Below, one piece after another: positions 1 through 40,268 of a stretch of 64,000 nucleotides of DNA; position 1 is the stretch's first letter; each line of letters opens with the position of its first letter. A program made the position numbers and the translations under genes. Origin of the DNA: Macrostomum lignano (taxonomy: Eukaryota); contig NIVC01000255.1 of NCBI GenBank assembly GCA_002269645.1, positions 682,001 to 746,000 of the forward strand, written 5' to 3'. The notes below the pieces were generated by a model. It ran no database searches, was not told where the DNA came from, and was given only the letters and a program-made list of their open reading frames with translations.

Positions 1-22
1 TTACGAGTACAATTTCACTCAC

Positions 23-13700: not shown

Positions 13701-16700
13701 AGGTTGGCTTGAAATGTACTTTTAGAAATGAGCGATCCGTCATAGCACTGACTTAAAGTCCTTGAAGACATTCTGATAATCACATATCACATATCGCGGT
13801 GTATCTTAAGAAAATTGCAGTATAATAGAGACACTAAAAGCGATTTATCTTAGAAATAAGTTTGAGACCACTGTGTGCATAGCAGAGTGTGTTAAACTGG
13901 GTAGCAACAGTCTATGGCCAGCCCTGCTGACCAACCCAAAAGCTGGGCAGCGATAGTCTATGGCCAGCCCTGCTGACCAACCCAAAAGCTGGGCAGCGAT
14001 AGTCTATGGCCAGCCCTGCTGACCAACCCAAAAGCTGGGCAGCGATAGTCTATGGCCAGCCCTGCTGACCAGCCCAAAACTGGGCAGCGATAGTCTATGG
14101 CCAGCCCTGCTGACCAACCCAGACTGCAAGCTTAAAAATCCACAGATTATTTTTTCGACCTCCCTAGCAACACTGCTGCTGTCATCTTAGCAGTAATATA
14201 TGGTTGGTCAGAGGGGGACTAAGACGATTTTATCATGGTTTGGTGACCATAAGATAAATTATAAATATTTAATAAAACATCTTGCACTTTCCAACTATAG
14301 GCGGCAAAAAAGGCATTGACAGATAAAAAGAAGAAAAGTTTTATCCTTAAAGAGAAGCATGATTGCTTTCTATAACTTCTCTCGCAGAATTCGATTCTGC
14401 AACTCAATTTTCTAGAGAGAATGAAATGTATAAACATGTACTTTTTGTCTATGCAGAACCTAATGATTGCTAATGTGCATAGGCTTAGGGAATTTCGTGT
14501 TCCTATTAGGGGAGCAGCTGGGATGCGAGACTGCCCGATCTGCTCTGTCGCTGTTCGAGTTTAGCGAGTGCTTCACCGCCGCCGCCACTTCACTTGAGAA
14601 TCCAGCTGCCTAAAAGAGATGAAGGAGCGGCTTTTGAAGGGATTGAGTCGTGACTTACAAACAGTTCGAAAGTTCGATCTTCGAATCTTTAAAGTTTGGA
14701 AACTTGAAAACTGAATGAAACTTAAGGTTGATTTTTTTACCTTGGATTCATGAAGTCATAAAATCGATTGTTAGGATTCAAATTAGATGTGTCAGTAGCG
14801 CTTAAGTAGATGTGTCAGTAGTGCTTAAGTAGATGTGTCAGTAGTGCTTAAGTAGATGTGTCAGTAGTGCTTAAGTAGATGTGTCAGTAGTGCTTAATTA
14901 GATGTGTCAGTAGTGCTTAATTAGATGTGTCAGTAGTGCTTAAGTAGATGTGTCAGTAGTGCTTAAGTAGATGTGTCAGTAGTGCTTAAGTAGATGTGTC
15001 AGTAGTGCTTAAGTAGATGTGTCAGTAGTGCTTAAGTAGATGTGTCAGTAGTGCTTAATTAGATGTGTCAGTAGTGCTTAATTAGATGTGTCAGTAGTGC
15101 TTAAGTAGATGTGTCAGTAGTGCTTAAGTAGATGTGTCAGTAGTGCTTAAGTAGATGTGTCAGTAGTGCTTAAGTAGATGTGTCAGTAGTGCTTAAGTAG
15201 ATGTGTCAGTAGTGCTTAAGTAGATGTGTCAGTAGTGCTTAATTAGATGTGTCAGTAGTGCTTAATTAGATGTGTCAGTAGTGCTTAAGTAGATGTGTCA
15301 GTAGTGCTTAATTAGATGTGTCAGTAGCGCTTAAGTAGATGTGTCAGTAGTGCTTAAGTAGATGTGTCAGTAGTGCTTAAGTAGATGTGTCAGTAGTGCT
15401 TAATTAGATGTGTCAGTAGTGCTTAATTAGATGTGTCAGTAGTGCTTAATTAGATGTGTCAGTAGTGCTTAATTAGATGTGTCAGCAGTGCTTAAGTAGA
15501 TGTGTCAGTATGTGTCCGTCAAAACACAGAATTGAATTTTACTGTATGTCCTGACATATCCTAAGAATCAATTACTGATTATCACAAATTAAACATAGAG
15601 ACCTGTCCACCTGTCAATCAAAACAGGAGTGGCACGACGAGCGGCTGCACTGGGACCCGAAGGACTACAACGGTTTGGAGGTGCTGCGAGTGCCATGTCA
15701 GAAAATCTGGCTGCCTGACATTGTGCTGTACAACAGGTGACATAGTGATTCTACAGACACTGACACACTGATTCTACAGGCACTGACATACTGATTCTAC
15801 TGACACTGACACACTGATTCTACAGACACTGACACACTGATTCTACAGGCACTGACACACTGATTCTACAGACACTGACACACTGATTCTACAGACACTG
15901 ACACACTGATTCTACAGACACTGACACACTGATTCTACAGACACTGACACACTGATTCTACTGACACTGACACACTGATTCTACAGACACTGACACACTG
16001 ATTCTACAGACACTGACACACTGATTCTACAGGCACTGACACACTGATTCTACAGACACTGACACACTGATTCTACAGACACTGACACACTGATTCTACA
16101 GACACTGACACACTGATTCTACTGACACTGACACACTGATTCTACAGACACTGACACACTGATTCTACAGACACTGACACACTGATTCTACAGGCACTGA
16201 CACACTGATTCTACAGACACTGACACACTGATTCTACAGACACTGACACACTGATTCTACAGGCACTGACACACTGATTCTACAGACACTGACACACTGA
16301 TTCTACAGACACTGACACACTGATTCTACAGACACTGACACACTGATTCTACAGACACTGACACACTGATTCTACAGACACTGACACACTGATTCTACTG
16401 ACACTGACACACTGATTCTACAGACACTGACACACTGATTCTACAGACACTGACACACTGATTCTACAGGCACTGACACACTGATTCTACAGACACTGAC
16501 ACACTGATTCTACAGACACTGACACACTGATTCTACAGACACTGACACACTGATTCTACTGACACTGACACACTGATTCTACAGGCACTGACACACTGAT
16601 TCTACAGACACTGACACACTGATTCTACAGTCACTGACACATCAAAGTCAACCGTGACCCCCCCCTACACCTGACGCAGTGCTGATGACTTCACCACAGG

Positions 16701-18646
16701 CTACATGCAGAGCAAGGCGATGGTGGACGCGAACGGCACCGTGTTTTGGCCCCACCCGCCAAGCTGCGATCCACCTGCAAGATCGACATCACGTATTTCC
16801 CGTTTGACGATCAGATTTGCACCATGAAGTTCGGCTCGTGGACCTACGATGGTTATCAAGTGAACATCACCAAGAAGTTGGTTAGATCTTCTGTTCAACC
16901 ATCGAGAAATTTTTATTTAAATCACGTGACATCTTGACAACACTTTCAGGCGCGAGGAAGTGGACTTTCAAATTATGTTCAAAGCGGAGAGTGGAATCTG
17001 ATTCGAATCGATGTGGAACGGCAGGAGGTGAGATCAGTGACCTGGATTTGGAACCTAAGGAAATTGATGTGGAACCTTAAGAAGTAGATATGGAACCTTG
17101 GGAAGTAGATATGGAACTGATGGAAATAGACATGGAACTGATGGAAATAGACATGGAACTGATGGAAATAGATATGGAACTGATGGAAACAGATATGGAG
17201 CTGATGGAAATAAACATGGAACTGATGGAAATAGATATGGAACTGATGGAAATAGACATGGAACTGATGGAAATAGACATGGAACTGATGGAAATAGACA
17301 TGGAACTGATGGAAAAAGACATGGAACTGATGGAAATAGACATGGAACTGATGGAAATGGACTTGGAACTGATGGAAATAGACACGGAACTGATGGAAAT
17401 AGACATGGAACTGATGGAAATAGACACGGAACTGATGGAAATAGATATGGAACTGGAGTGAAATACTGCAATAAATCTATTCGAAACACCAGGGTACTTC
17501 GTTAGGAGTCTTACATGTTAGCAAGTATTGACGCGTATCTCGTAATTTTATTTAGTTTGACTAAACAAGGCCAACAAAAGGTATAAGTTTACAGAGCCTA
17601 GTAAACTTATTAACGCCGAGTACCCAGGGAATGGCAGTGGGCAGTCCAGCGGCCGCCCAAGTCTCTTTAATCAAATTTCTGCCTGGGAAGGCTGCTGCTG
17701 CAGCGGCCGAGCTCTCAATATTTGTGAAGTAGAATTTTGTCTGGACCGCTCCAGATGGTGTCGAGTGAGAGCAGAGCAGATCATGAACTTGATAGGAGCC
17801 TTGGAGCCTTGAGCAAAAGGTTCAATAAGTCTGCTTTGAGTTCTGTTACTGCATTGCAAAGTTGTTCAGCTCGGATGCTTGTTGATCTAGTCTAATTTCC
17901 GGTCTGCTAAGGATCTATTCTCATCGATCGGGGGCTAATCTCAGCTGTATCAGACAAATCTAATCTCAGCGAAATCTAATCTGAGCTGTCTCAGGCAAAA
18001 TCTAATCTCAGCTGTCTCAGACTAAATCTAATTTCAGCTGTATCAGGCTAAATCTAGTCTCAGCTAAATCTAATGTCAGCTGTCTCAGGCTAAATCTAAT
18101 CTCAGCTGTCTCACCTAAATCTAATTTAAGCTGTCTCACCTAAATCTAATCTCAGCTGTCTCAGGCTAAATCTAATCTCAGCTGTCTCAGGCTAAATCTA
18201 ATCTCAGCTGTCTCAGGCTAAATCTAATCTCAGCTGTCTCAGGCTAAATCTAATCTCAGCTGTCTCAGGCTAAATCTAATCTCAGCTGTCTCAGGCTAAA
18301 TCTAATCTCAGCTGTCTCAGGCTAAATCTAATATCAGCTAAATCTAATCTCAGCTAAATCTAATCTCAGCTGTCTCAGGCTAAATCTAATCTCAGCTGTC
18401 TCAGGCTAAAATCTATGAATCTCAGCTAAATCTAATCTCAGCTGTCTCAGGCTAAATCTAATCTCAGGTGTCTCAGTTAAATCTAACCCAAATGTCACCA
18501 GCCAATAAATAAAAAGCTCTACCTCTCCAAAACCATTCCAGACCGTCTACCCCATCAGCCGGTGCCCTACCCGGACATCAAGTTCCACATAGTGATCCGC
18601 AGGCGCACCCTGTATACTGTTCAACATCATCTTCCCTGCCTGTGGC
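10704..18646 (+). CDS. Nicotinic acetylcholine receptor subunit (Cys-loop channel), extracellular domain, isoform using distal exon 1a; truncated by assembly gap
   Basis: Exons 10704-10815 (signal-like), 13387-13544 ([14 protein letters not shown]), 13658-13702 (45 nt, [15 protein letters not shown]), 15627-15736 (110 nt, [16 protein letters not shown]), 16680 to about 16877 (Cys loop [22 protein letters not shown]), 16950-17027 (SNYVQSGEW), 18542-18646 ([16 protein letters not shown]). No TM1-TM4 exons are visible. 1-nt deletions at about 16750 and near the gap edge. Confidence 0.9.
11050..12262. repeat. 19/21-bp minisatellite (AAACTCTCACAAACTA[AA]CAG) in nAChR intron 1a
   Basis: 21-bp variant on the left and 19-bp variant on the right. 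Confidence 0.95.
13112..13336 (+). CDS. Alternative first coding exon (1b) of the nAChR gene: signal peptide plus alpha1 helix and beta1 strand
   Basis: ATG at 13112 opens [27 protein letters not shown]...[21 protein letters not shown]...[11 protein letters not shown]. It ends at a GTGAGT donor in phase 0, in frame with the common exon at 13658. Confidence 0.8.
13909..14121. repeat. 46-bp tandem repeat in an nAChR intron
   Basis: AGTCTATGGCCAGCCCTGCTGACCAACCCAAAAGCTGGGCAGCGAT, about 4.5 copies. Confidence 0.92.
14784..15510. repeat. 23-bp minisatellite (TAGATGTGTCAGTAGTGCTTAAG)
   Basis: About 31 near-perfect copies. Confidence 0.97.
15742..16640. repeat. 23-bp minisatellite (CTGACACACTGATTCTACAGACA) filling an nAChR intron
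   Basis: Starts a few bases after the donor at 15737 and ends about 40 bp before the acceptor at 16679. Confidence 0.97.
17085..17455. repeat. 21-bp minisatellite (ATGGAACTGATGGAAATAGAC)
   Basis: Source of the MELMEID ORFs. Confidence 0.95.
17935..18485. repeat. 26-bp minisatellite (CTAAATCTAATCTCAGCTGTCTCAGG)
   Basis: Direct reading. Confidence 0.93.
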
Positions 18647-19450
18647 NNNNNNNNNNNNNNNNNNNNNNNNNNNNNNNNNNNNNNNNNNNNNNNNNNNNNN
18701 NNNNNNNNNNNNNNNNNNNNNNNNNNNNNNNNNNNNNNNNNNNNNNNNNNNNNNNNNNNNNNNNNNNNNNNNNNNNNNNNNNNNNNNNNNNNNNNNNNNN
18801 NNNNNNNNNNNNNNNNNNNNNNNNNNNNNNNNNNNNNNNNNNNNNNNNNNNNNNNNNNNNNNNNNNNNNNNNNNNNNNNNNNNNNNNNNNNNNNNNNNNN
18901 NNNNNNNNNNNNNNNNNNNNNNNNNNNNNNNNNNNNNNNNNNNNNNNNNNNNNNNNNNNNNNNNNNNNNNNNNNNNNNNNNNNNNNNNNNNNNNNNNNNN
19001 NNNNNNNNNNNNNNNNNNNNNNNNNNNNNNNNNNNNNNNNNNNNNNNNNNNNNNNNNNNNNNNNNNNNNNNNNNNNNNNNNNNNNNNNNNNNNNNNNNNN
19101 NNNNNNNNNNNNNNNNNNNNNNNNNNNNNNNNNNNNNNNNNNNNNNNNNNNNNNNNNNNNNNNNNNNNNNNNNNNNNNNNNNNNNNNNNNNNNNNNNNNN
19201 NNNNNNNNNNNNNNNNNNNNNNNNNNNNNNNNNNNNNNNNNNNNNNNNNNNNNNNNNNNNNNNNNNNNNNNNNNNNNNNNNNNNNNNNNNNNNNNNNNNN
19301 NNNNNNNNNNNNNNNNNNNNNNNNNNNNNNNNNNNNNNNNNNNNNNNNNNNNNNNNNNNNNNNNNNNNNNNNNNNNNNNNNNNNNNNNNNNNNNNNNNNN
19401 NNNNNNNNNNNNNNNNNNNNNNNNNNNNNNNNNNNNNNNNNNNNNNNNNA
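18647..19450. other. Assembly gap (804 N)
   Basis: Run of N. ORFs in the supplied track that cross it are artefacts. Confidence 1.
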
Positions 19451-19974
19451 AGAGACGATCTGTTTTGGGTGAGTATTATCTGCTGTAGAAGTATTGTACA
19501 CCAGAGTACTTGTGTTACTTGGTAGAGCACAATTCAAAAGCAATGCAACAATCTCAGTGGCATTGTTGGGACAAAGCTACAAACGCAATGAATAGTAAAC
19601 ACAGCCCAGCCTAGCTCAAGGCTAGTAATTTGTTGGGCATTTATTGGGACATTGCAGCCAGGCCTATTTTTTGAACAGCATTTGTTGGGTCGCACTTATT
19701 GGGACAATACTGATTCTAATCGCGACTACTTCTGAGTTCTGACTTTTCAAAACAGACCCAGCATTAGTTGAACACGTTCTATTAAAGGGTTCCTTTATAG
19801 CCTATTAATGATTACTAAAGCAAGCCTATCTTAATTGATTTTTTCCTCGCAGATTCTGAAGTCAGCCACGCCAGCGACATGCCTAAGAGACAAGAATGCG
19901 CTTTAACGATCAGCAGCGAGCATTCTGATCTCGCCGCTGCATCCGTCATTTTTCACTTGCTGCTGCAGCAGCAG

Positions 19975-20016
<42 letters not shown>

Positions 20017-20623
20017 GCTATCCGTGCAGGCAGTCAGTCTATTTGTGAATTTTCTGGTGGATCTGAAGAAAACCCGTCCGGCACAGGATTAAAGAGAAAG
20101 AGACGATCTGTTTTGGGTGAGTATTATCTGCTGTAGAAGTATTGTACACCAGAGTACTTGTGTTACTTGGTAGAGCACAATTCAAAAGCAATGCAACAAT
20201 CTCAGTGGCATTGTTGGGACACAAGCTACAAACGCAATGAATAGTAAACACAGCCCAGCCTAGCTCAAGGCTAGTAATTTGTTGGGCATTTATTGGGACA
20301 TTGCAGCCAGGCCTATTTTTGAACAGCATTTGTTGGGTCGCACTTATTGGGACAATACTGATTCTAATCGCGACTACTTCTGAGTTCTGACTTTTCAAAA
20401 CAGACCCAGCATTAGTTGAACACGTTCTATTAAAGGGTTCCTTTATAGCCTATTAATGATTACTAAAGCAAGCCTATCTTAATTGATTTCTTTTCCTCGC
20501 AGATTCTGAAGTCAGCCACGCCAGCGACATGCCTAAGAGACAAGAATGCGCTTTAACGATCAGCAGCGAGCATTCTGATCTCGCCGCTGCATCCGTCATT
20601 TGGTTCACTTGCTGCTCACAAGC

Positions 20624-20659
<36 letters not shown>

Positions 20660-21266
20660 CTATCCGTGCAGGCAGTCAGTCTATTTGTGAATTTTCTGGT
20701 GGATCTGAAGAAAACCCGTCCGGCACAGGATTAAAGAGAAAGAGACGATCTGTTTTGGGTGAGTATTATCTGCTGTAGAAGTATTGTACACCAGAGTACT
20801 TGTGTTACTTGGTAGAGCACAATTCAAAAGCAATGCAACAATCTCAGTGGCATTGTTGGGACACAAGCTACAAACGCATGAATAGTAAACACAGCCCAGC
20901 CTAGCTCAAGGCTAGTAATTTGTTGGGCATTTATTGGGACATTGCAGCCAGGCCTATTTTTTGAACAGCATTTGTTGGGTCGCACTTATTGGGACAATAC
21001 TGATTCTAATCGCGACTACTTCTGAGTTCTGACTTTTCAAAACAGACCCAGCATTAGTTGAACACGTTCTATTAAAGGGTTCCTTTATAGCCTATTAATG
21101 ATTACTAAAGCAAGCCTATCTTAATTGATTTCTTTTCCTCGCAGATTCTGAAGTCAGCCACGCCAGCGACATGCCTAAGAGACAAGAATGCGCTTTAACG
21201 ATCAGCAGCGAGCATTCTGATCTCGCCGCTGCATCCGTCATTTGGTTCACTTGCTGCTCACAAGCC

Positions 21267-21314
<48 letters not shown>

Positions 21315-21923
21315 GCTATCCGTGCAGGCAGTCAGTCTATTTGTGAATTTTCTGGTGGATCTGAAGAAAACCCGTCCGGCACAGGATTAAAGAGAAAGAG
21401 ACGATCTGTTTTGGGTGAGTATTATCTGCTGTAGAAGTATTGTACACCAGAGTACTTGTGTTACTTGGTAGAGCACAATTCAAAAGCAATGCAACAATCT
21501 CAGTGGCATTGTTGGGACACAAGCTACAAACGCAATGAATAGTAAACACAGCCCAGCCTAGCTCAAGGCTAGTAATTTGTTGGGCATTTATTGGGACATT
21601 GCAGCCAGGCCTATTTTTTGAACAGCATTTGTTGGGTCGCACTTATTGGGACAATACTGATTCTAATCGCGACTACTTCTGAGTTCTGACTTTTCAAAAC
21701 AGACCCAGCATTAGTTGAACACGTTCTATTAAAGGGTTCCTTTATAGCCTATTAATGATTACTAAAGCAAGCCTATCTTAATTGATTTCTTTTCCTCGCA
21801 GATTCTGAAGTCAGCCACGCCAGCGACATGCCTAAGAGACAAGAATGCGCTTTAACGATCAGCAGCGAGCATTCTGATCTCGCCGCTGCATCCGTCATTT
21901 GGTTCACTTGCTGCTCACAAGCC

Positions 21924-21965
<42 letters not shown>

Positions 21966-22573
21966 CTATCCGTGCAGGCAGTCAGTCTATTTGTGAATTT
22001 TCTGGTGGATCTGAAGAAAACCCGTCCGGCACAGGATTAAAGAGAAAGAGACGATCTGTTTTGGGTGAGTATTATCTGCTGTAGAAGTATTGTACACCAG
22101 AGTACTTGTGTTACTTGGTAGAGCACAATTCAAAAGCAATGCAACAATCTCAGTGGCATTGTTGGGACACAAGCTACAAACGCAATGAATAGTAAACACA
22201 GCCCAGCCTAGCTCAAGGCTAGTAATTTGTTGGGCATTTATTGGGACATTGCAGCCAGGCCTATTTTTTGAACAGCATTTGTTGGGTCGCACTTATTGGG
22301 ACAATACTGATTCTAATCGCGACTACTTCTGAGTTCTGACTTTTCAAAACAGACCCAGCATTAGTTGAACACGTTCTATTAAAGGGTTCCTTTATAGCCT
22401 ATTAATGATTACTAAAGCAAGCCTATCTTAATTGATTTCTTTTCCTCGCAGATTCTGAAGTCAGCCACGCCAGCGACATGCCTAAGAGACAAGAATGCGC
22501 TTTAACGATCAGCAGCGAGCATTCTGATCTCGCCGCTGCATCCGTCATTTGGTTCACTTGCTGCTCACAGCGC

Positions 22574-22612
<39 letters not shown>

Positions 22613-23221
22613 GCTATCCGTGCAGGCAGTCAGTCTATTTGTGAATTTTCTGGTGGATCTGAAGAAAACCCGTCCGGCACAGGATTAAAGAGAAAGAGAC
22701 GATCTGTTTTGGGTGAGTATTATCTGCTGTAGAAGTATTGTACACCAGAGTACTTGTGTTACTTGGTAGAGCACAATTCAAAAGCAATGCAACAATCTCA
22801 GTGGCATTGTTGGGACACAAGCTACAAACGCAATGAATAGTAAACACAGCCCAGCCTAGCTCAAGGCTAGTAATTTGTTGGGCATTTATTGGGACATTGC
22901 AGCCAGGCCTATTTTTTGAACAGCATTTGTTGGGTCGCACTTATTGGGACAATACTGATTCTAATCGCGACTACTTCTGAGTTCTGACTTTTCAAAACAG
23001 ACCCAGCATTAGTTGAACACGTTCTATTAAAGGGTTCCTTTATAGCCTATTAATGATTACTAAAGCAAGCCTATCTTAATTGATTTCTTTTCCTCGCAGA
23101 TTCTGAAGTCAGCCACGCCAGCGACATGCCTAAGAGACAAGAATGCGCTTTAACGATCAGCAGCGAGCATTCTGATCTCGCCGCTGCATCCGTCATTTGG
23201 TTCACTTGCTGCTCACAAGCC

Positions 23222-23260
<39 letters not shown>

Positions 23261-23860
23261 GCTATCCGTGCAGGCAGTCAGTCTATTTGTGAATTTTCTG
23301 GTGGATCTGAAGAAAACCCGTCCGGCACAGGATTAAAGAGAAAGAGACGATCTGTTTTGGGTGAGTATTATCTGCTGTAGAAGTATTGTACACCAGAGTA
23401 CTTGTGTTACTTGGTAGAGCACAATTCAAAAGCAATGCAACAATCTCAGTGGCATTGTTGGGACACAAGCTACAAACGCAATGAATAGTAAACACAGCCC
23501 AGCCTAGCTCAAGGCTAGTAATTTGTTGGGCATTTATTGGGACATTGCAGCCAGGCCTATTTTTTGAACAGCATTTGTTGGGTCGCACTTATTGGGACAA
23601 TACTGATTCTAATCGCGACTACTTCTGAGTTCTGACTTTTCAAAACAGACCCAGCATTAGTTGAACACGTTCTATTAAAGGGTTCCTTTATAGCCTATTA
23701 ATGATTACTAAAGCAAGCCTATCTTAATTGATTTCTTTTCCTCGCAGATTCTGAAGTCAGCACGCCAGCGACATGCCTAAGAGACAAGAATGCGCTTTAA
23801 CGATCAGCAGCGAGCATTCTGATCTCGCCGCTGCATCCGTCATTTGGTTCACTTGCTGCT

Positions 23861-23907
<47 letters not shown>

Positions 23908-24506
23908 GCTATCCGTGCAGGCAGTCAGTCTATTGTGAATTTTCTGGTGGATCTGAAGAAAACCCGTCCGGCACAGGATTAAAGAGAAAGAGACGATCTG
24001 TTTTGGGTGAGTATTATCTGCTGTAGAAGTATTGTACACCAGAGTACTTGTGTTACTTGGTAGAGCACAATTCAAAAGCAATGCAACAATCTCAGTGGCA
24101 TTGTTGGGACACAAGCTACAAACGCAATGAATAGTAAACACAGCCCAGCCTAGCTCAAGGCTAGTAATTTGTTGGGCATTTATTGGGACATTGCAGCCAG
24201 GCCTATTTTTTGAACAGCATTTGTTGGGTCGCACTTATTGGGACAATACTGATTCTAATCGCGACTACTTCTGAGTTCTGACTTTTCAAAACAGACCCAG
24301 CATTAGTTGAACACGTTCTATTAAAGGGTTCCTTTATAGCCTATTAATGATTACTAAAGCAAGCCTATCTTAATTGATTTCTTTTCCTCGCAGATTCTGA
24401 AGTCAGCCACGCCAGCGACATGCCTAAGAGACAAGAATGCGCTTTAACGATCAGCAGCGAGCATTCTGATCTCGCCGCTGCATCCGTCATTTGGTTCACT
24501 TGCTGC

Positions 24507-24549
<43 letters not shown>

Positions 24550-25150
24550 GCTATCCGTGCAGGCAGTCAGTCTATTTGTGAATTTTCTGGTGGATCTGAA
24601 GAAAACCCGTCCGGCACAGGATTAAAGAGAAAGAGACGATCTGTTTTGGGTGAGTATTATCTGCTGTAGAAGTATTGTACACCAGAGTACTTGTGTTACT
24701 TGGTAGAGCACAATTCAAAAGCAATGCAACAATCTCAGTGGCATTGTTGGGACACAAGCTACAAACGCAATGAATAGTAAACACAGCCCAGCCTAGCTCA
24801 AGGCTAGTAATTTGTTGGGCATTTATTGGGACATTGCAGCCAGGCCTATTTTTTGAACAGCATTTGTTGGGTCGCACTTATTGGGACAATACTGATTCTA
24901 ATCGCGACTACTTCTGAGTTCTGACTTTTCAAAACAGACCCAGCATTAGTTGAACACGTTCTATTAAAGGGTTCCTTTATAGCCTATTAATGATTACTAA
25001 AGCAAGCCTATCTTAATTGATTTCTTTTCCTCGCAGATTCTGAAGTCAGCCACGCCAGCGACATGCCTAAGAGACAAGAATGCGCTTTAACGATCAGCAG
25101 CGAGCATTCTGATCTCGCCGCTGCATCCGTCATTTGGTTCACTTGCTGCT

Positions 25151-25195
<45 letters not shown>

Positions 25196-25804
25196 GCTAT
25201 CCGTGCAGGCAGTCAGTCTATTTGTGAATTTTCTGGTGGATCTGAAGAAAACCCGTCCGGCACAGGATTAAAGAGAAAGAGACGATCTGTTTTGGGTGAG
25301 TATTATCTGCTGTAGAAGTATTGTACACCAGAGTACTTGTGTTACTTGGTAGAGCACAATTCAAAAGCAATGCAACAATCTCAGTGGCATTGTTGGGACA
25401 CAAGCTACAAACGCAATGAATAGTAAACACAGCCCAGCCTAGCTCAAGGCTAGTAATTTGTTGGGCATTTATTGGGACATTGCAGCCAGGCCTATTTTTT
25501 GAACAGCATTTGTTGGGTCGCACTTATTGGGACAATACTGATTCTAATCGCGACTACTTCTGAGTTCTGACTTTTCAAAACAGACCCAGCATTAGTTGAA
25601 CACGTTCTATTAAAGGGTTCCTTTATAGCCTATTAATGATTACTAAAGCAAGCCTATCTTAATTGATTTCTTTTCCTCGCAGATTCTGAAGTCAGCCACG
25701 CCAGCGACATGCCTAAGAGACAAGAATGCGCTTTAACGATCAGCAGCGAGCATTCTGATCTCGCCGCTGCATCCGTCATTTGGTTCACTTGCTGCTCACA
25801 AGCC

Positions 25805-25846
<42 letters not shown>

Positions 25847-26447
25847 GCTATCCGTGCAGGCAGTCAGTCTATTTGTGAATTTTCTGGTGGATCTGAAGAA
25901 AACCCGTCCGGCACAGGATTAAAGAGAAAGAGACGATCTGTTTTGGGTGAGTATTATCTGCTGTAGAAGTATTGTACACCAGAGTACTTGTGTTACTTGG
26001 TAGAGCACAATTCAAAAGCAATGCAACAATCTCAGTGGCATTGTTGGGACACAAGCTACAAACGCAATGAATAGTAAACACAGCCCAGCCTAGCTCAAGG
26101 CTAGTAATTTGTTGGGCATTTATTGGGACATTGCAGCCAGGCCTATTTTTTGAACAGCATTTGTTGGGTCGCACTTATTGGGACAATACTGATTCTAATC
26201 GCGACTACTTCTGAGTTCTGACTTTTCAAAACAGACCCAGCATTAGTTGAACACGTTCTATTAAAGGGTTCCTTTATAGCCTATTAATGATTACTAAAGC
26301 AAGCCTATCTTAATTGATTTCTTTTCCTCGCAGATTCTGAAGTCAGCCACGCCAGCGACATGCCTAAGAGACAAGAATGCGCTTTAACGATCAGCAGCGA
26401 GCATTCTGATCTCGCCGCTGCATCCGTCATTTGGTTCACTTGCTGCT

Positions 26448-26491
<44 letters not shown>

Positions 26492-27092
26492 GCTATCCGT
26501 GCAGGCAGTCAGTCTATTTGTGAATTTTCTGGTGGATCTGAAGAAAACCCGTCCGGCACAGGATTAAAGAGAAAGAGACGATCTGTTTTGGGTGAGTATT
26601 ATCTGCTGTAGAAGTATTGTACACCAGAGTACTTGTGTTACTTGGTAGAGCACAATTCAAAAGCAATGCAACAATCTCAGTGGCATTGTTGGGACACAAG
26701 CTACAAACGCAATGAATAGTAAACACAGCCCAGCCTAGCTCAAGGCTAGTAATTTGTTGGGCATTTATTGGGACATTGCAGCCAGGCCTATTTTTTGAAC
26801 AGCATTTGTTGGGTCGCACTTATTGGGACAATACTGATTCTAATCGCGACTACTTCTGAGTTCTGACTTTTCAAAACAGACCCAGCATTAGTTGAACACG
26901 TTCTATTAAAGGGTTCCTTTATAGCCTATTAATGATTACTAAAGCAAGCCTATCTTAATTGATTTCTTTTCCTCGCAGATTCTGAAGTCAGCCACGCCAG
27001 CGACATGCCTAAGAGACAAGAATGCGCTTTAACGATCAGCAGCGAGCATTCTGATCTCGCCGCTGCATCCGTCATTTGGTTCACTTGCTGCT

Positions 27093-27136
<44 letters not shown>

Positions 27137-27736
27137 GCTATCCGTGCAGGCAGTCAGTCTATTTGTGAATTTTCTGGTGGATCTGAAGAAAACCCGTCCG
27201 GCACAGGATTAAAGAGAAAGAGACGATCTGTTTTGGGTGAGTATTATCTGCTGTAGAAGTATTGTACACCAGAGTACTTGTGTTACTTGGTAGAGCACAA
27301 TTCAAAAGCAATGCAACAATCTCAGTGGCATTGTTGGGACACAAGCTACAAACGCAATGAATAGTAAACACAGCCCAGCCTAGCTCAAGGCTAGTAATTT
27401 GTTGGGCATTTATTGGGACATTGCAGCCAGGCCTATTTTTTGAACAGCATTTGTTGGGTCGCACTTATTGGGACAATACTGATTCTAATCGCGACTACTT
27501 CTGAGTTCTGACTTTTCAAAACAGACCCAGCATTAGTTGAACACGTTCTATTAAAGGGTTCCTTTATAGCCTATTAATGATTACTAAAGCAAGCCTATCT
27601 TAATTGATTTCTTTTCCTCGCAGATTCTGAAGTCAGCAACCGCCAGCGACATGCCTAAGAGACAAGAATGCGCTTTAACGATCAGCAGCGAGCATTCTGA
27701 TCTCGCCGCTGCATCCGTCATTTGGTTCACTTGCTC

Positions 27737-27775
<39 letters not shown>

Positions 27776-29032
27776 GCTATCCGTGCAGGCAGTCAGTCTA
27801 TTTGTGAATTTTCTGGTGGATCTGAAGAAAACCCGTCCGGCACAGGATTAAAGAGAAAGAGACGATCTGTTTTGGGTGAGTATTATCTGCTGTAGAAGTA
27901 TTGTACACCAGAGTACTTGTGTTACTTGGTAGAGCACAATTCAAAAGCAATGCAACAATCTCAGTGGCATTGTTGGGACACAAGCTACAAACGCAATGAA
28001 TAGTAAACACAGCCCAGCCTAGCTCAAGGCTAGTAATTTGTTGGGCATTTATTGGGACATTGCAGCCAGGCCTATTTTTTGAACAGCATTTGTTGGGTCG
28101 CACTTATTGGGACAATACTGATTCTAATCGCGACTACTTCTGAGTTCTGACTTTTCAAAACAGACCCAGCATTAGTTGAACACGTTCTATTAAAGGGTTC
28201 CTTTATAGCCTATTAATGATTACTAAAGGCAAGCCTATCTTAATTGATTTCTTTTCCTCGCAGATTCTGAAGTCAGCACGCCAGCGACATGCCTAAGAGA
28301 CAAGAATGCGCTTTAACGATCAGCAGCGAGCATTCTGATCTCGCCGCTGCATCCGTCATTTGGTTCACTTGCTGCTCACAAGCCGCAGCAGCAGCCAGCA
28401 GCAGCAGCAGCAGCAGCAGCAGCCGCTATCCGTGCAGGCAGTCAGTCTATTTGTGAATTTTCTGGTGGATCTGAAGAAAACCCGTCCGGCACAGGATTAA
28501 AGAGAAAGAGACGATCTGTTTTGGGTGAGTATTATCTGCTGTAGAAGTATTGTACACCAGAGTACTTGTGTTACTTGGTAGAGCACAATTCAAAAGCAAT
28601 GCAACAATCTCAGTGGCATTGTTGGGACACAAGCTACAAACGCAATGAATAGTAAACACAGCCCAGCCTAGCTCAAGGCTAGTAATTTGTTGGGCATTTA
28701 TTGGGACATTGCAGCCAGGCCTATTTTTTGAACAGCATTTGTTGGGTCGCACTTATTGGGACAATACTGATTCTAATCGCGACTACTTCTGAGTTCTGAC
28801 TTTTCAAAACAGACCCAGCATTAGTTGAACACGTTCTATTAAAGGGTTCCTTTATAGCCTATTAATGATTACTAAGCAAGCCTATCTTAATTGATTTCTT
28901 TTCCTCGCAGATTCTGAAGTCAGCCACGCCAGCGACATGCCTAAGAGACAAGAATGCGCTTTAACGATCAGCAGCGAGCATTCTGATCTCGCCGCTGCAT
29001 CCGTCATTTGGTTCACTTGCTGCTCACAAGCC

Positions 29033-29071
<39 letters not shown>

Positions 29072-29680
29072 GCTATCCGTGCAGGCAGTCAGTCTATTTG
29101 TGAATTTTCTGGTGGATCTGAAGAAAACCCGTCCGGCACAGGATTAAAGAGAAAGAGACGATCTGTTTTGGGTGAGTATTATCTGCTGTAGAAGTATTGT
29201 ACACCAGAGTACTTGTGTTACTTGGTAGAGCACAATTCAAAAGCAATGCAACAATCTCAGTGGCATTGTTGGGACACAAGCTACAAACGCAATGAATAGT
29301 AAACACAGCCCAGCCTAGCTCAAGGCTAGTAATTTGTTGGGCATTTATTGGGACATTGCAGCCAGGCCTATTTTTTGAACAGCATTTGTTGGGTCGCACT
29401 TATTGGGACAATACTGATTCTAATCGCGACTACTTCTGAGTTCTGACTTTTCAAAACAGACCCAGCATTAGTTGAACACGTTCTATTAAAGGGTTCCTTT
29501 ATAGCCTATTAATGATTACTAAGGCAAGCCTATCTTAATTGATTTCTTTTCCTCGCAGATTCTGAAGTCAGCCACGCCAGCGACATGCCTAAGAGACAAG
29601 AATGCGCTTTAACGATCAGCAGCGAGCATTCTGATCTCGCCGCTGCATCCGTCATTTGGTTCACTTGCTGCTCACAAGCC

Positions 29681-29719
<39 letters not shown>

Positions 29720-30327
29720 GCTATCCGTGCAGGCAGTCAGTCTATTTGTGAATTTTCTGGTGATCTGAAGAAAACCCGTCCGGCACAGGATTAAAGAGAA
29801 AGAGACGATCTGTTTTGGGTGAGTATTATCTGCTGTAGAAGTATTGTACACCAGAGTACTTGTGTTACTTGGTAGAGCACAATTCAAAAGCAATGCAACA
29901 ATCTCAGTGGCATTGTTGGGACACAAGCTACAAACGCAATGAATAGTAAACACAGCCCAGCCTAGCTCAAGGCTAGTAATTTGTTGGGCATTTATTGGGA
30001 CATTGCAGCCAGGCCTATTTTTTGAACAGCATTTGTTGGGTCGCACTTATTGGGACAATACTGATTCTAATCGCGACTACTTCTGAGTTCTGACTTTTCA
30101 AAACAGACCCAGCATTAGTTGAACACTTTCTATTAAAGGGTTCCTTTATAGCCTGTTAATGATTACTAAGGCAAGCCTATCTTAATTGATTTCTTTTCCT
30201 CGCAGATTCTGAAGTCAGCAACGCCAGCGACATGCCTAAGAGACAAGAATGCGCTTTAACGATCAGCAGCGAGCATTCTGATCTCGCCGCTGCATCCGTC
30301 ATTTGGTTCACTTGCTGCTCACAAGCC

Positions 30328-30381
<54 letters not shown>

Positions 30382-30420
30382 GCTATCTGTGCAGCAGTCA
30401 GTTAATTCATGAGTTTTCTG
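19451..30420 (+). repeat. Tandem array of about 647-bp units (17 near-complete copies plus a partial one), each with a (GCA)n tract and exon-like splice signals
   Basis: The acceptor TTTCTTTTCCTCGCAG recurs with exon starts from 19853 to about 30206 (mean spacing about 647). Each copy except the last has a G|GTGAGT donor. The last copy is diverged. Confidence 0.97.
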
Positions 30421-30600
30421 GCGGAGCTGGATATTTTTTAATTTTCTGAATTGAGAAGCCGATTAACTGTTGTGTGCTTCACTGGAATATTATTTAGAGG
30501 ATGCATTTTTTGCAGTCTGTTTCTATTAAAATCCGGTGCAATGACCGCGGTAGAGCTCTAGCATTTGCTTTTTATAGTATTTGTGTATATTCTTTTTCAA

Positions 30601-30782
30601 GCTATGCTGGAATTGTTGGGACAGCCCTATCCACACTGGCTATGCTGGAATTGTTGGGACAGCCCTATCCACTGGCTATGCTGGAATTGTTGGGACAGCC
30701 CTATCCACACTGGCTATGCTGGATTTGTTGGGACAGCCCTATCCACACTGGCTATGCTGGAATTGTTGGGACAGCCCTATAC
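30601..30782. repeat. 38-bp tandem repeat (GCTATGCTGGAATTGTTGGGACAGCCCTATCCACACTG)
   Basis: About 5 copies; shares the TTGTTGGGACA core with the intron part of the 647-bp unit. Confidence 0.92.
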
Positions 30783-31819
30783 TATAGTGTGTGCTGGCTT
30801 CTGCTATAGTGTGGTTCATTTCCGCATCCTTTTACGTAGCATTCTGTGGGTCCGAATAGCTGACATGTACCTTTTGAGTAATTCTAGTGATTGTGTCATA
30901 ATCAATAAAGTACATTTTTATGAACAGTGGAGTTTCGCTACAGAATTGTTTTTTCCCAGTGGCACTAAATGTAGCAAATTTTGTTTATTCAGATCGTAAA
31001 ATTTTTTTGATATGTGTCAATGTCGTTTGTTTTCGATAACCTTAAAGTCCCTTGCCATTTACCATCCTGTCTTCTATAATCTATGATCGCTGAAATTATC
31101 CGGTGAAATTTGACGCGCTGATATTATTGCCTTAAGTGGAATTCAGCAAGACACCAGGGTTTTTTAATTCTGTTTTAGACAAGTATACATGTACAATCTG
31201 TTGTGAGTTCAATGCACCTCGAAAAATGCTTTCCAACTGTTTTCAGTAAGCCAAAAGCATGTTGTCAATAAAAATCGATTTGGTGGGTTGAAAATTGCCT
31301 GTGTGGGGACGTGTGTGTGTGTGATTTTTCGTGTGTCGGAGCAGTCCCAATATGTGCAAGCTTTTGCACACTTGGCCAATAAGTGCCTCGTGCACGTTTG
31401 TGTGTGTGTGTGTGTGTTTGTGTGTGTACTTTTAACTTATTTATGAATTATCCAGATCTCCACTCGCTCTTCCTCTTCGCTTTCCCGAATTTCATTTTCA
31501 TTTTTGCTAAATTTGGATACCAATTTTTTTCCAGAAAAAGGAACACTCTCACAAGCTGTTTTTTCAGAGCTTTAACACGATAAATTGACTTGAAAATTGA
31601 ATACAAATGATTCGTATTGTCTGTTTTATACGTTCACTTTGTTTAACTGTTTTTATAAATTGTCAAATTTTAATAAATTTCTTTTTGATAAATATATTTT
31701 TGCATTGTTGATTGAGAACTTCTAAGAAAATACAGTTTCCCTTGATTTCTATTGAAGTGGGATTAATGGTTTTTTTAAGGAAAATTAGGAATTGAAAGGA
31801 AGAATCAAGGATTTCTTTA

Positions 31820-32395
31820 AAAGTTGGTTTTGGTGGGTTTCTAGGAAATTTTGGTTCGATACGTTTCTAGGTAATGTTGGTTTAGTGGGTTTCTAGGAAA
31901 ATTGGTTTCGGTGGGTTTCTAGAAAAATTTTATTCAGTGAGTTTCTAGGAAAGTTTTGGTTTGGTGGGTTTCTAGGAAAGTAGGTTTCGGTGGCAGGTTT
32001 CTAGGAAAATTACTAGTTGATTTGGTGAGTTTCTAGGAAAGTTTTGTTCTGTAAGTTCCTAGAAAAGTTGAATTTAGTGGGTTTCTAGGAAAATTTGGTG
32101 CAGTGAGTTTCTAGGAAAATTTGGTTCGATGGGTTTCTAAAGTGGGAAACTAAGGCTCCAGACGATTTCTAGGCAAGTTGAATTTAAGATTTCTAAAGAA
32201 AGTTTAGGTTGGGGACATTTCTAGGAAAGTACGATGCATGGATTGCTGCTAGAAAATTCTAATTCAGAGAATATATAGGAAAGTAGGATTCTGGTATATC
32301 TAGATTCGGGGGATTTCTAGGAATATCTAAGAAAAATGGTTTCAAGTTGGTTTCTAAGAAAGTAGGGTTCGGAGTTTTCTAGGAAATTAGGGTAT
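31820..32395. repeat. Degenerate repeat with TTTCTAGGAAA core upstream of PGGT1B
   Basis: Many spaced copies of GTTTCTAGGAAA. Confidence 0.85.
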
Positions 32396-32477
32396 ACAGA
32401 GGACTCCTATGTAGCTCCGTGCAGTTTAGCCAGAGTTCATAAAAAATCTATTAGAATCCTCACCAACTCTGCACTGC

Positions 32478-35277
32478 ATGCTGACAAGCCAAATGTCTAA
32501 CATCAGCGCGGGAGACAGCTCCAGCAGTGACGATGAAGGCCGCAGTCGGCGGTGTCGCCAACAGCAGCAGCTGCCAGACATGGAGAAGTTCAGCGCCCAG
32601 CTCACCAAGTACTGCAGGCGGGTGCTGACCTGCCTGCCCTCGCACTGCAGCGGCTACGATCAGAACAGATTGGTGTTTGCTTGGTTTGCCATCTCCACTA
32701 TGGACATGCTGGATAGGACTCAGGAGCTAAATAGGTATCAGTTCTGATCATCTAGTCTCAGTCTAATCTATCATCTAATCTCATTCTAATCTATCGTCTA
32801 ATCTCATCCTAATCTATCATCTAATCTCATTATAATCCAGCATCTAATCTTACATTTTCGTCAAGCATTTAATCTCGCCTTAATCCCACATCTAATATCA
32901 CCCTAATCAGACTTCTAATATCACCATAATCTAGCATCCAATCTCACCCTAATCTAGCATCTAATCTCACCCTAATCCAGCATCTAATGTAATCTCACCC
33001 TAATCCAGCATCTAATGTAATCTCACCCTAATCTAGCATCTTATCTCACCCTAATCCAGCAACTAATCTCACCCTAATACCACATCTAATCTCACCCTAA
33101 TCAAACATCTAATCTCACCCTAAACCGGCATTTAATCTCACCCTCAACCCGCACAACGCCTCCCGCAGGCAGGAGATCATAGACTGGGTGTACAGCCTTC
33201 AGATTCTCCCCAGCTCCGGCCGGCCCGTTGCCAACTGCGGCTTCCGCGGCGCTCCCCTGCTGGGCAGCCCGGCGGATCCGCACCTGGACGCCGAGAATCC
33301 GCTGCCGTACGATGCCAGCCACCTCACCATGGTATTCGCCGGCCTGGGCATCCTGCTCATGCTCGGCGACGATCTTCAACGAGTCGATCGAGACGCCGTT
33401 CTTAGCGGAGTCGCGGCCCTGCAGACGCCGGCGGGCTGCTTCACGGCTGGCAAATTTGCTCCGGAAAGCGACTTGCGATTCGTGTTCTCCGCCTGCGTGT
33501 CCTGCTATTATTTGAACGATTTCACCAAAATCGACGTTGACAGAAGTGTGAGCGAATTTTGTTTAAATGTCGTTATATATTCTTTATGAAATCCAAAACT
33601 GACGTTTCTAAGAAAATTCTAGCCGCTTTTGTTTCTGGGGAATTCGAACCTCGTCCGTTTCTACTAAGTTGCAATATGCTTTCTAGGAAACACCAGTTGT
33701 TGCGTTTCTAAGAAATTCTTGTAGAACCCGTTTCTAAGAAGTTCCTGTCGCAACCGTTTCTAGGAAATTTCCTATCGCATCCGTTTCTAGGAAATTCCTA
33801 TCGATCCGTTTCTAGGAAATTCCTATCGCATCCGTTTCTATGAAATTCCTATCGCATCCGTTTCTAAGAAATTCCTATCGCACCCGTTTCTAAGAAATTC
33901 CTATCGCACCCGGCCCGTTTCTAAGAAATTCCTATCGTATCTGTTTCTAAGAAATTCCTATTGCACCCGTTTCTAAGAAATTCCTATCGCACCCGTTTCT
34001 AAGAAATTCCTATCGCACCCGTTTCTAAGAAATTCCTATCGCACCCGTTTCTAAGAAATTCCTATCGCACCCGTTTCTAATAAATTCCTATCGCACCCGT
34101 TTCTAAGAAATTCCTATCGCACCCGTTTCTAAGAAATTCCTATCGCATCCGTTTATGAAATTCAAATTTGTCCTGTTTCCGGGAAATTATAAATTTTGTT
34201 TTTCAAGTTCCAACGAAACTCCAATCCGGCCCTGTGGCCCTGCAAACGTCGACAAGGACCGCAAGCACTGGTTTAGAAAATTCCAACGAGCCATTTCTTG
34301 GAACGCCCCCCCACCTGTTGCTGATTATTCTTGGTAGTTTTATTTCTGCTGTTTCCAGGAGATTCAAATTTCTATTTCTGAAAAACTTCATAATCTGTAA
34401 TTTCGACTGGATATCTAAAATGAGAGAATCTCAAACTGCCATTCTATATTTGAGAAATCCTAAATTGTTTTTAAAAATCCATCAACTGAAATTTCTAAGA
34501 AAATATAACGGTCGTTTCTAGGAAATCTCTGAAACCGTTTCTTGGAAATCTCAACATGTCATTTCGATATATTTTTGAGGAAATTTTTTTGAAAACTGAC
34601 TAAACGGTATGTTTTATACAGCAATATTATTTTCAGTGTCACTAATTCTACTTAACATTTGCGATTGTTCTACTTCAAGTAGAAATGCACACATTTTGCT
34701 GCAATTTTTTGCTATAAATTGTGAAAAAATGATAAATTATCTGTAGGTCGCCTTCCTGCTGGCCTGCCAGACCTACGAAGGCGGCTTCGGTCAGCGGCCC
34801 GGCTCTGAGGCTCACGGCGGCTCCACCTTCTGCGCCATCGCTTCGTTGAAACTTCTCGGCAGGCTGGACTCCGCCCTGCCAGCCGACAGTCGCCAACGTT
34901 CGCGCCTGTTGCGCTGGCTTTGCCAGCGTCAGCACCGCGGCTTCCACGGCCGACCGTACAAGGACGACGATTCCTGCTATACGTTCTGGATTGGAGCCTC
35001 CCTGGCAGCCCTTGGCCGGGCCAATCTGATTGACCGATCGGCCCTTGTTGAATTCGTTTTCAGCTGCTACAGCGGCATGGAGGGCGGCTTCTCTAAGTAT
35101 CCGGGCGACTCCGCCGACCCGCTGCACACCTACCTGGCTCTGGCTGGCTTGGCCGCCCTCCGCCTCGAGGACGAGCGGCTGGAACCCATCCGGCCTGAGG
35201 CCAACATCACCGAGAGGGCTCACCTGCATATGCTGGCCCTGCATCGGGCTGCTGCCGCTTCTGCTGCTTCTCACTGA
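32478..35277 (+). CDS. PGGT1B: Geranylgeranyltransferase type-I beta subunit
   Basis: Exons 32478-32734, 33169-33547 and 34747-35277 join in frame (388 aa; start ATG uncertain). Motifs: IIDWVYSLQILP, CGFRG, ASHLTMVFAGL, ESDLRFVFSAC, QTYEGGFGQRPGSEAHGGSTFCA, GFHGRPYKDDDSCYTFWIG (Zn D-x-C), GGFSKYP..ADPLHTYL (Zn His). Confidence 0.93.
32745..33145. repeat. ATCTAATCTCACCCT-type minisatellite in PGGT1B intron 1
   Basis: Direct reading. Confidence 0.9.
33600..34545. repeat. 26-bp minisatellite (GTTTCTAAGAAATTCCTATCGCACCC) with degenerate flanks in PGGT1B intron 2
   Basis: Homogeneous core at about 33760-34155. Confidence 0.9.
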
Positions 35278-39020: not shown

Positions 39021-40268
39021 GTAGAAAAATTATTGATTACCACAACGGGTCACAAGAAGGTGGGTGAAGGGGACATGTCCCCTCTGTTCCCCGGTGTCGA
39101 CGCCCCTGTTGCTAAAAACACTAAAGAAGCAAATTTTCCAACTATATATAGAAATCGGCAATTTTCCAATAGAAATAGCTGGCAAAATAAAAAATATTAC
39201 AAAAGGGAAGCCATTTTATCTCAATAATTTCTTTTTCCATAGACAGAAAGGCAGGCAGCACCGTTCAGGCCATGACCGCTAAGGTTTTCCCAAACCATCC
39301 CGAGGACCTATCCTGTCCTGTCCTCAGTTCCTCTCATTCTTTATCCCCAACCATGACAAGTATAGTATGTAGTATATAGTATAGTATGCAGTGCCATAAA
39401 TCATCACTTGATACCTTGAATTGGCTGGGGTCTATACAGACAAGATGAGACAGAGACAGTCCAGTCTGTGCCTCTCTGTCTTCTCTGTCTGTGTCTGCCT
39501 GTCTTCATGGAGTTTTCCAAGCCTTAACTAGGATGGGGGGTGGCGGGGCTCGGTCCAGTCCAGTCGGGGGAGAGAGAGCCATGCAATTCGCTGACGAATC
39601 GGTTGCGTAAAAGCTGTCTTGCGTAATAATAGGGTTCTGGCTGGGCCACAGTCTAAGGGTCCGCGGGTGGTGGCGGCTGGGGTGGCTGGCGTGAATGTGG
39701 AACCCCCAGCGCCGTGTAACCCCCCATAACCCCACCCTATACACCCCGGCGGTGGATTGTCCTGAGGCTTCGGGGCAAAGACGAGGGCTCGGGGGCGTTC
39801 AGGGATGGATCACGTGATAGAGCTTAGAAATTTAGGGGGCTGTGGGGTGGGGTTTTGTGAAGAAGGCTTTTCCTGGCTATGGCCTATAGAAAGGCCTGAT
39901 TACGCAATCGTTAGGCGGCCTTCTGCTCTCTCTCTCTCTCTCTCCCTCCGTCTGTCTCGTTCCAATTCGGCTTATTCATTCATTTCAAACGCGGCCCTTT
40001 GGAGGAGTATAGGAGTATATAGGCGGGGGTCCTCGTTCGCCGTTGGCTCGACCAATATAATTTCATCTCTTGGCCCTGTATATACCCCTTCCCCTATAGC
40101 ACACACCAGTGTCCGAGTCGCGTAATTCGTAAGAGCAGAAAAGGCGACAGTGTTCGGAGAAAGAGAGAGAATTTCAGTCTGACTGACTCAGCTTACTTAC
40201 CAGATTTATAAACTTTGTAATACATATAGAAAACCGCTAGATGTCGAATACTTAGCGGCATTCGAATA

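Follow-up and report, generated by a model that had tools for sequence, protein, structure and literature searches.

A 647-bp exon-intron cassette, amplified in tandem and dispersed in Macrostomum lignano, is spliced in RNA-based gene models and may belong to a young coding family

Can a homogenised tandem repeat with a splice acceptor in every unit be a gene, or is it a satellite that happens to be spliced? The question is raised by an array in the flatworm Macrostomum lignano, located in a stretch of 64,000 nucleotides (nt) of assembly GCA_002269645.1 (contig NIVC01000255.1, positions 682,001 to 746,000 of the forward strand). This whole stretch is called the window, and positions without a locus name follow its own numbering. 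The data showed that the repeated cassette is spliced in public gene models and lies in a dispersed, multi-copy segment. On balance, we regard the array as a probable member of a functional coding family that is young, multi-copy and seen so far only in M. lignano. The array and its representative parts are listed below (bp, base pairs; ^ marks a splice site, an exon junction or, in peptides, a candidate cleavage site).

19450-30380, + strand: tandem array of 17 head-to-tail exon-intron units of about 647 bp (Tandem Repeats Finder and a repeat finder)
21145-21414, + strand: representative intact exon of 270 nt, with phase 1 on either side; public M. lignano proteins match it at 90-94% identity
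21415-21801, + strand: representative intron, 387 nt, starting with GTGAGT and ending with TTTCTTTTCCTCGCAG
25683-27236, + strand: longest run of successive clean exons (25683-25946, 26334-26591 and 26979-27236)

The initial annotation had described a 17-fold amplified unit of an intron plus a symmetric phase-1 exon, with a strong acceptor in every unit and a donor in all but the last, and this description was confirmed. The cassette consists of a 387-nt GT-AG intron and an exon of 252-270 nt (about 261 nt) in phase 1 at both ends. The units are spaced at 639-657 bp, and stretches of 300 nt are mostly 100% identical between units. The acceptor TTTCTTTTCCTCGCAG^ATTCTGAAG was found 17 times in the window (16 exact, one with three mismatches), against an expectation of 0 by chance in 100 shuffles. 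The donor TTTTGG^GTGAGT was also found 17 times, the first right behind the 803-N assembly gap that the array directly abuts at 19450, and none in the last unit, which ends at about 30380. G^GTGAGT had been taken for the donor of most exons in the window, but only some of the other exons use it and others have GTGAGC or GTGAGG. All the window's donors fit the species consensus GT[G/A]AG (PMC8629364). Each unit intron carries four to five degenerate TTGTTGGGAC motifs, and an Rfam scan of 18000-32000 gave no match.

Of the six frames, a single one runs through the exon without a stop. Exon 21145-21414 is translated as DSEVSHASDMPKRQECALTISSEHSDLAAASVIWFTCCSQ(A)18IRAGSQSICEFSGGSEENPSGTGLKRKRRSVL, and the exon translations agree with the module consensus peptide and the phase symmetry that had been predicted; module peptides include SVLDSEVSHASDMPK, QECALTISSEHSDLAAASVIWFTCCSQ, SVLASEVSNASDMPK and GSQSICEFSGGSEENPSGTGLK. 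The claim that the segment is a multiple of three and open held for part of the copies. Ten of the 16 complete exons are multiples of three: seven read cleanly as a module (21145, 22452, 23100, 25683, 26334, 26979 and 28911), exon 19853 is open with an internal compensated shift, and exons 27624 and 28264 have paired shifts and contain stops. The other six (20503, 21802, 23748, 24394, 25037 and 29559) are out of frame. The longest conceptual spliced open reading frame (ORF) in the window as assembled is 339 amino acids (aa), and the protein of about 1500 aa proposed earlier is a projection.

The poly-Ala codons are pure (GCA)n, with about 13-18 Ala in the units of the window and 20 in the last copy, and almost all differences in exon length come from this tract. 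The frame breaks had been put down to 1-nt indels of the kind found elsewhere in the window. Such indels were indeed seen, but they concentrate at the 5' border of (GCA)n, and away from this border they are no rarer in exons (about 7 events per 222 nt x 16 exons) than in introns (7 per 387 nt x 16 introns). The window copy appears to be either a decaying member of its family or one laden with assembly indel errors.

A protein search with two modules returned 29 matches, all from Macrostomum lignano. The same family is present in GenBank (GCA_002269645.1) as the hypothetical proteins BOX15_Mlig026960g1, BOX15_Mlig003618g1, BOX15_Mlig029855g13 and BOX15_Mlig033615g2, and in UniProt as about 30 further A0A1I8... 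records. The window module is 90-98% identical to the public models P0001-P0008 and P0030, with the same exon boundaries. The spliced junction that had been predicted, and proposed as a check, is present in them: KRKRRSVL^DSEVSH occurs in P0001, P0006, P0007 and P0008, and SVL^ASEVSN in the GenBank models P0002 and P0003. The coding-sequence spans of P0006 (locus L003, 10001-11197) and P0002 (locus L001, 10001-11497) each agree with two 387-nt introns having been spliced out exactly where predicted. The BOX15_ annotation of assembly Mlig_3_7 was built from RNA sequencing (RNA-seq) reads by STAR, StringTie plus TACO and TransDecoder ORFs, and transcripts overlapping repeat annotations were left out of the GenBank annotation (PMC5730564). 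These RNA-seq-based models show that the cassette is spliced as predicted, which gives repeated modules of 80-87 aa, each ending in KRKRR. Judged by sequence, the repeat is a member of an already deposited, uncharacterised M. lignano gene family. A literature search found the gene identifiers and module peptides in no paper and nothing on satellite DNA of such a kind in M. lignano, and the supplements of PMC5816591 and PMC5730564 contain no entry for the family. Several fragments bear UniProt names (Kazal-like, Dymeclin, UCH, Rho-GAP, SANT) that seem to reflect artefacts of annotation or the fusion of models.

The array had been regarded as unique, but it was found at four or more further places in GCA_002269645.1, that is, at no fewer than five sites, with differing surroundings. 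The other loci are:

L001: six full units plus the first and last exons
L002: at least 16 units, reaching the contig end
L003: nine full units, within the intron of a TIR-domain gene and antisense to it
L004: four units, then interrupted

In L003 (1-20371, - strand), the host gene is annotated with 981 aa, and a 22-23-bp minisatellite extends over about 6 kb upstream of the array. In L004, the array is cut from 11385 on, at unit position 50, by unrelated TGTGAAGTGATAC..., which may be an insertion or an assembly break.

The copies share their flanks as well as their units. A full 2.46-kb upstream segment with a sharp start at GTTTGTGCATTAGG is present in L001, L003 and L004, and part of it was seen within the region fetched for L002. 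On the other side lies a shared downstream segment:

30381-31427, + strand: downstream segment of 1.03 kb, 98.8-99.3% identical to L001 and L003 (L002 and L004 do not extend this far)

Within the downstream segment lies a 38-bp minisatellite (30601-30780), and a (TG)n tract marks the segment's end. The left segment end is identical in L001 (4400-4440), L003 (6170-6205) and L004 (6060-6100), and the right end, ...GTGCACGTTTGTG(TG)n, is identical in L001, L003 and the window (31380-31427). Outside these ends, the loci are unrelated to one another and to the window. GTGCACCCTGTGTG is present in the outer left flank of L001 and of L004 as well, so the segment is bracketed by TG-rich direct similarity. 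The array is a dispersed multi-copy segment and not a single gene. No transposase, terminal inverted repeat, long terminal repeat or target-site duplication was recognised, and the flank ORFs had no Pfam match. The motif TTGTTGGGAC (in inverted form GTCCCAATAA / CCCAATAAGTGCG) recurs in the minisatellite at 30601-30780, in the unit introns and at L001 4435-4560, and occurs close to either end of the flanking DNA that the loci share; an older repeat or mobile element may have left it behind. The idea that the flanks are degenerate copies of the unit was rejected, as only 98 nt behind the poly-Ala in the right flank (79% identity) and 64 nt in the left flank were significant, and further intron-like similarity suspected by eye was not supported.

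Units within one array are more alike than units of different arrays. Substitution divergence was 0.08-0.5% within arrays (0.08% in the window) and 0.8-1.0% between them, the exception being the window against L003 (0.15%); these two arrays share a D/H variant. Variants are array-specific and occur in blocks, and a stop codon has spread along one array. Such block-wise, array-specific variants suggest unequal crossing-over or gene conversion, through which the arrays would expand, contract and homogenise. Slippage in (GCA)n would alter the poly-Ala, which ranges from 7 to 20 residues across arrays, by three-base steps that preserve the frame.

The ends of the gene were sought at the locus itself and at its homologues. 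Three features define them in the window:

18647-19449: assembly gap of 803 N, which truncates the neighbouring receptor gene and conceals the array's 5' portion; L001, L003 and L004 suggest that the 2.46-kb upstream segment is concealed as well
30206-30405, + strand: terminal exon, diverging after the poly-Ala, ...(A)20ICAAVS, with stop TAA at 30403-30405
30525-30530, + strand: ATTAAA, likely polyadenylation signal about 80-120 nt past the stop, with AATAAA at the same place in L001 and L003

As had been noted earlier, the 5' end of the array lies in the gap. The gap size cannot be real, because the remainder of the receptor gene, the 2.46-kb segment and a further number of units would have to fit into it, and the join is uncertain. 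At the 5' end of the array in L001, L003 and L004 there is a partial first exon at the acceptor cccacgcacag^GTTCATCC, in phase 1 and with no ATG. In the conceptual spliced mRNA, no ATG precedes the in-frame Met of the module (MPKRQEC...). The M. lignano spliced leader itself ends in ATG (PMC8629364), but as a start of the main ORF it was rejected: joined to the acceptor of the first exon or of a unit, it opens another frame, of about 55 or 18 codons. A signal-peptide-like ORF at L001 5304-5732, starting MTSLLAWVWAAILC, was also rejected. Stops or frameshifts interrupt it in L003 and L004, five nonsynonymous changes fall in its first 32 codons, and a good phase-1 donor is lacking. At the 3' end, the last exon of L001 reads ...IRAGSQLIDEFSGRAGYFLSF and a stop, followed by AATAAA about 100 nt further on; read in the L001 frame, the last exon of the window gives ...SQLIHEFSGGAGYFLIF, with TGA at 30447-30449.

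Support for a coding function comes from diverged relatives. An exhaustive HMMER search of 1.8 billion proteins revealed two diverged module families in M. lignano, with E-values of 1.9e-10 and 9e-10. With the window type called A, they are:

Variant B: P0039 and P0035 (UniProt A0A1I8HX90 and A0A1I8FV09), 51-55% identity to A
Variant C: P0034, P0037 and P0038 (UniProt A0A1I8HFW1, A0A1I8J6G4 and A0A1I8HBC5), 33% identity, at least nine tandem modules

Variants B and C keep the 80-aa module length, the frame, the (A/D)S(E/K)V start, the SQ core and an invariant KRKRRS end. The middle of their modules is CAG/GCA-rich like that of A but is read as Gln-rich instead of poly-Ala, and Cys content differs among the variants, the modules of variant C having none. 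That the six residues KRKRRS are invariant at 33% overall identity implies constraint. A protein search with variant C returned nothing, and one with variant B returned the A-type GenBank models only. P0037, the longer variant C model, continues into cadherin repeats and is likely to be a fusion. The 'Kazal-like' tail of variant C was considered as a sign of secretion and rejected, for it has no Kazal domain in Pfam and corresponds to the 3' flank of the A locus in another frame.

Several observations weigh against a functional coding family. Every transcript model is a partial fragment. In the better assembly, variation among units affects 12 of the 387 intron positions (391 alignment columns) and 8 of about 216 exon positions outside (GCA)n, and six of these eight exon changes are nonsynonymous or nonsense and two synonymous; this comparison has weak statistical power because divergence is only about 1%. 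A TGG>TAG change affects 11 of the 16 L002 exons and a single L004 exon, and every array, the better assembly included, has one or more frameshifted exons, in assemblies of imperfect base accuracy (32-64% error-free bases in the two M. lignano assemblies; PMC5730564). No real Pfam domain was found in modules A, B or C, the matches to Bd3614_N, QIL1 and other families being sub-threshold or repeat-inflated and hence spurious. AlphaFold2 gave no usable model of P0002 (mean predicted local distance difference test score, pLDDT, of 38), and neither the protein search nor the exhaustive HMMER search found a homologue outside M. lignano. The initial annotation had expected an upstream phase-1 signal-peptide exon, but no conserved phase-1 Met or signal-peptide exon was present in the 2.45 kb upstream at the homologous loci. 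A 1-nt deletion relative to L001, common to the window and L003, shortens the C-terminus.

The evidence from variants B and C also has weak points. A protein database can reveal only families that have an ORF, and both variants derive from the error-prone ML2 assembly. The three variants read the tail DNA in three different frames, and the Cys-rich tail of variant C is homologous to DNA that is non-coding in A: the C-terminus of P0034 matches L001 11500-11619, in the A-type 3' flank, at 53% over 43 aa in a different frame with a stop. Moreover, the purine-rich code of KRKRR (AAGAGAAAGAGACGA) could have been kept as an exonic splicing enhancer and not for its peptide.

These points would fit a functionless spliced repeat, a reading that we consider possible but unlikely. 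An exon-intron fragment would have been caught in a segment (3.5 kb plus the array) that is dispersed and possibly mobile, and would have been amplified as a satellite; with good splice sites kept, it would be transcribed and spliced, its frame would be the remnant of an ancestral exon and its 'proteins' would be artefacts of ORF calling. Three or more copies have identical sharp left and right boundaries, both TG-rich, in unrelated surroundings, and the copy in L003 lies antisense in the intron of the TIR-domain gene. Exons are conserved no better than introns among the copies, the substitutions look neutral, and a nonsense codon has been homogenised across L002. The shifts of tail frame among A, B and C, the A-C homology that reaches into a non-coding flank and the lack of a recognised start exon, domain or fold are all in keeping with this reading, as is the genome itself, about 15% of which consists of simple and tandem repeats (PMC5730564). 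As in a non-coding satellite, the units are head-to-tail and homogenised, and as in a transposable element, discrete shared ends occur at unrelated sites. In contrast to a non-coding satellite, there are processed transcripts, in the form of spliced models, and the frame is held in B and C. The retention of module length, of frame over 3-10 modules and of KRKRRS at 33-55% identity counts against the functionless repeat, because neutral decay to that level should have yielded stops and indels. It is further disfavoured by the lack of any recognised mobile-element hallmark or flank domain and by the removal of repeat-overlapping transcripts from the GenBank annotation. Dispersal without exon-specific conservation, which the initial annotation had named as a sign against its proposal, is largely what was seen at this shallow depth; the absence of a spliced junction, the other sign it had named, was not seen.

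If the family is coding, as we favour, its product can be sketched. Translation of intact copies would start at the module Met (MPKRQEC...) and yield a repetitive, disordered protein rich in Ser, Ala and Glu. The invariant K-R-K-R-R^S would most likely be a furin-type convertase site, at which the chain would be cut into module peptides of about 80 aa. KRKRR^S is of the R-X-K/R-R type, is found in every intact module and does not vary across A, B and C. From sequence, K-R-K-R-R^S-V at each module boundary appears near-ideal for a furin-type protease, and processing there is a prediction. The module Met is followed by a hydrophobic stretch with a mean Kyte-Doolittle hydropathy of up to 1.56 over 19 aa, the poly-Ala rendering the N-terminal end of the Met-started module hydrophobic, and several Met-started models carry the UniProt name 'Secreted protein'. 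The poly-Ala is specific to variant A and is probably a recent by-product rather than the functional core, because it is pure microsatellite code and the corresponding region is read as Gln-rich in B and C. The fullest version of this scheme, a functional gene of very recent origin that is copied around the genome as a discrete segment and adjusts its product through added cassettes, each supplying one furin-released peptide, is offered tentatively and seems to us improbable as a whole. If true, the product could be a Macrostomum-specific secreted gland, adhesive or seminal-fluid peptide, A, B and C would be diversifying fast, and gene birth and dosage evolution by cassette amplification would be visible in progress.

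A doubtful alternative for the product is a nuclear or nucleolar disordered protein, in which acidic, Ser-rich CK2-type stretches would alternate with KRKRR as a nuclear localisation signal, one repeat per exon. Treacle and Nopp140 are models for a nuclear protein of acidic-Ser/basic repeats. The SEVS, SSEHSD and GGSEEN clusters precede KRKRR in the module, variant C is rich in Ser, Ala, Thr and Glu without Cys, no signal-peptide exon was found upstream at the homologous loci, and the low-confidence prediction throughout (mean pLDDT 38) would suit disorder. However, R-K-R-R^S-V comes close to the ideal furin site, the LAAASVIWFTCCSQ(A)n stretch of the module is hydrophobic, UniProt calls several Met-started models 'Secreted protein', and no similarity to treacle, Nopp140 or any Pfam family was found.

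The neighbours of the array bear on a further reading, in which the array would be part of the adjacent Cys-loop receptor gene. The other genes of the window are:

18-3549, - strand: VWA-domain gene
13158-18646, + strand: Cys-loop (nicotinic-type) receptor gene (Neur_chan_LBD, E = 3e-44)
32560-35274, + strand: prenyltransferase beta subunit (geranylgeranyltransferase-I-like), downstream of the array
40230-43600, + strand: nuclear receptor (zf-C4) with Gln/Asn-rich stretches, downstream of the array
55756-62135, - strand: bestrophin

The first ligand-binding-domain exon of the receptor is present in two adjacent diverged copies (about 13158-13337 and 13384-13598), which could be alternative or duplicated. 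Its M1 exon (18559-18646) has a 1-nt frameshift and enters the gap, and M2-M4 are missing from the window. Nearly every intron and intergenic spacer of the window (1-64000) has its own minisatellite (129 Tandem Repeats Finder rows, periods mostly 11-60 bp), in agreement with the repeat content of the genome (PMC5730564). That the array is an intron satellite of the receptor gene or codes for its cytoplasmic loop is very unlikely. The ligand-binding-domain and M1 exons do enter the gap just upstream on the same strand, but the array is not followed by M2-M4 exons, and next on that strand come the prenyltransferase and the nuclear receptor; no M2-M4 ORFs were found in 30381-32450, and tblastn with a hand-written receptor transmembrane query found nothing in the window. 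At the other four loci, a conserved upstream segment of its own precedes the array, with no receptor gene close by, and the 803-N gap is too small for the required content, so that the join is uncertain. That the array and its uniformity are products of repeat mis-assembly is barely credible: the gap, the many 1-nt indels and near-identical units in the window and the low share of error-free bases (32-64% in the two assemblies; PMC5730564) would allow it, but the same structure, with varying copy numbers and locus-specific variants, occurs at four other GCA_002269645.1 loci, and spliced transcript models back the array.

If translated, the array would offer a clear and very recent case of a long repetitive protein made by multiplying an exon together with its intron and then copying the locus elsewhere. 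With arrays about 1% diverged, intact copies beside dead ones and B and C as an outgroup, the origin, frame upkeep and death of such genes become testable in a laboratory flatworm with transgenesis and RNA interference. If not translated, the array calls for caution in annotation: the leftover frame of a spliced satellite has then given dozens of database 'proteins', some of them misnamed (Dymeclin, UCH domain-containing, Kazal-like).

Compared with the BOX15 family (Mlig026960g1 and others), the window array has the same module (90-98% identity), junction and downstream flank. It differs from the BOX15 loci in lying between a Cys-loop receptor and a prenyltransferase gene, in having at least 17 units against 4-16, and in its more numerous frame-breaking indels. 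Variants B and C are alike in their tandem modules of about 80 aa and their KRKRRS end, and differ in identity (33-55%), Cys content and tail frame. Outside M. lignano, the comparisons are analogies. In LPA, the kringle IV-2 repeat is a head-to-tail exon-plus-intron unit with a symmetric exon block, copy-number variation and units kept near-identical by unequal crossing-over. The architecture of the M. lignano array is alike, which makes it an analogue and not a member of that family. The LPA unit encodes a folded conserved domain, and its gene is single-copy, with an evident start and signal peptide, whereas the M. lignano unit has no recognisable fold, lies in a dispersed locus and has a putative translation product. 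Nematode polyprotein allergens (ABA-1) and multi-copy neuropeptide precursors are tandem polyproteins cut at spaced R-X-K/R-R sites. Unlike ABA-1-type polyproteins, the M. lignano family has no signal peptide that was found, no sequence similarity to them and one intron per module; if its product is secreted, near-identical modules bounded by a furin-type site would be the feature that the two have in common, again by analogy only.

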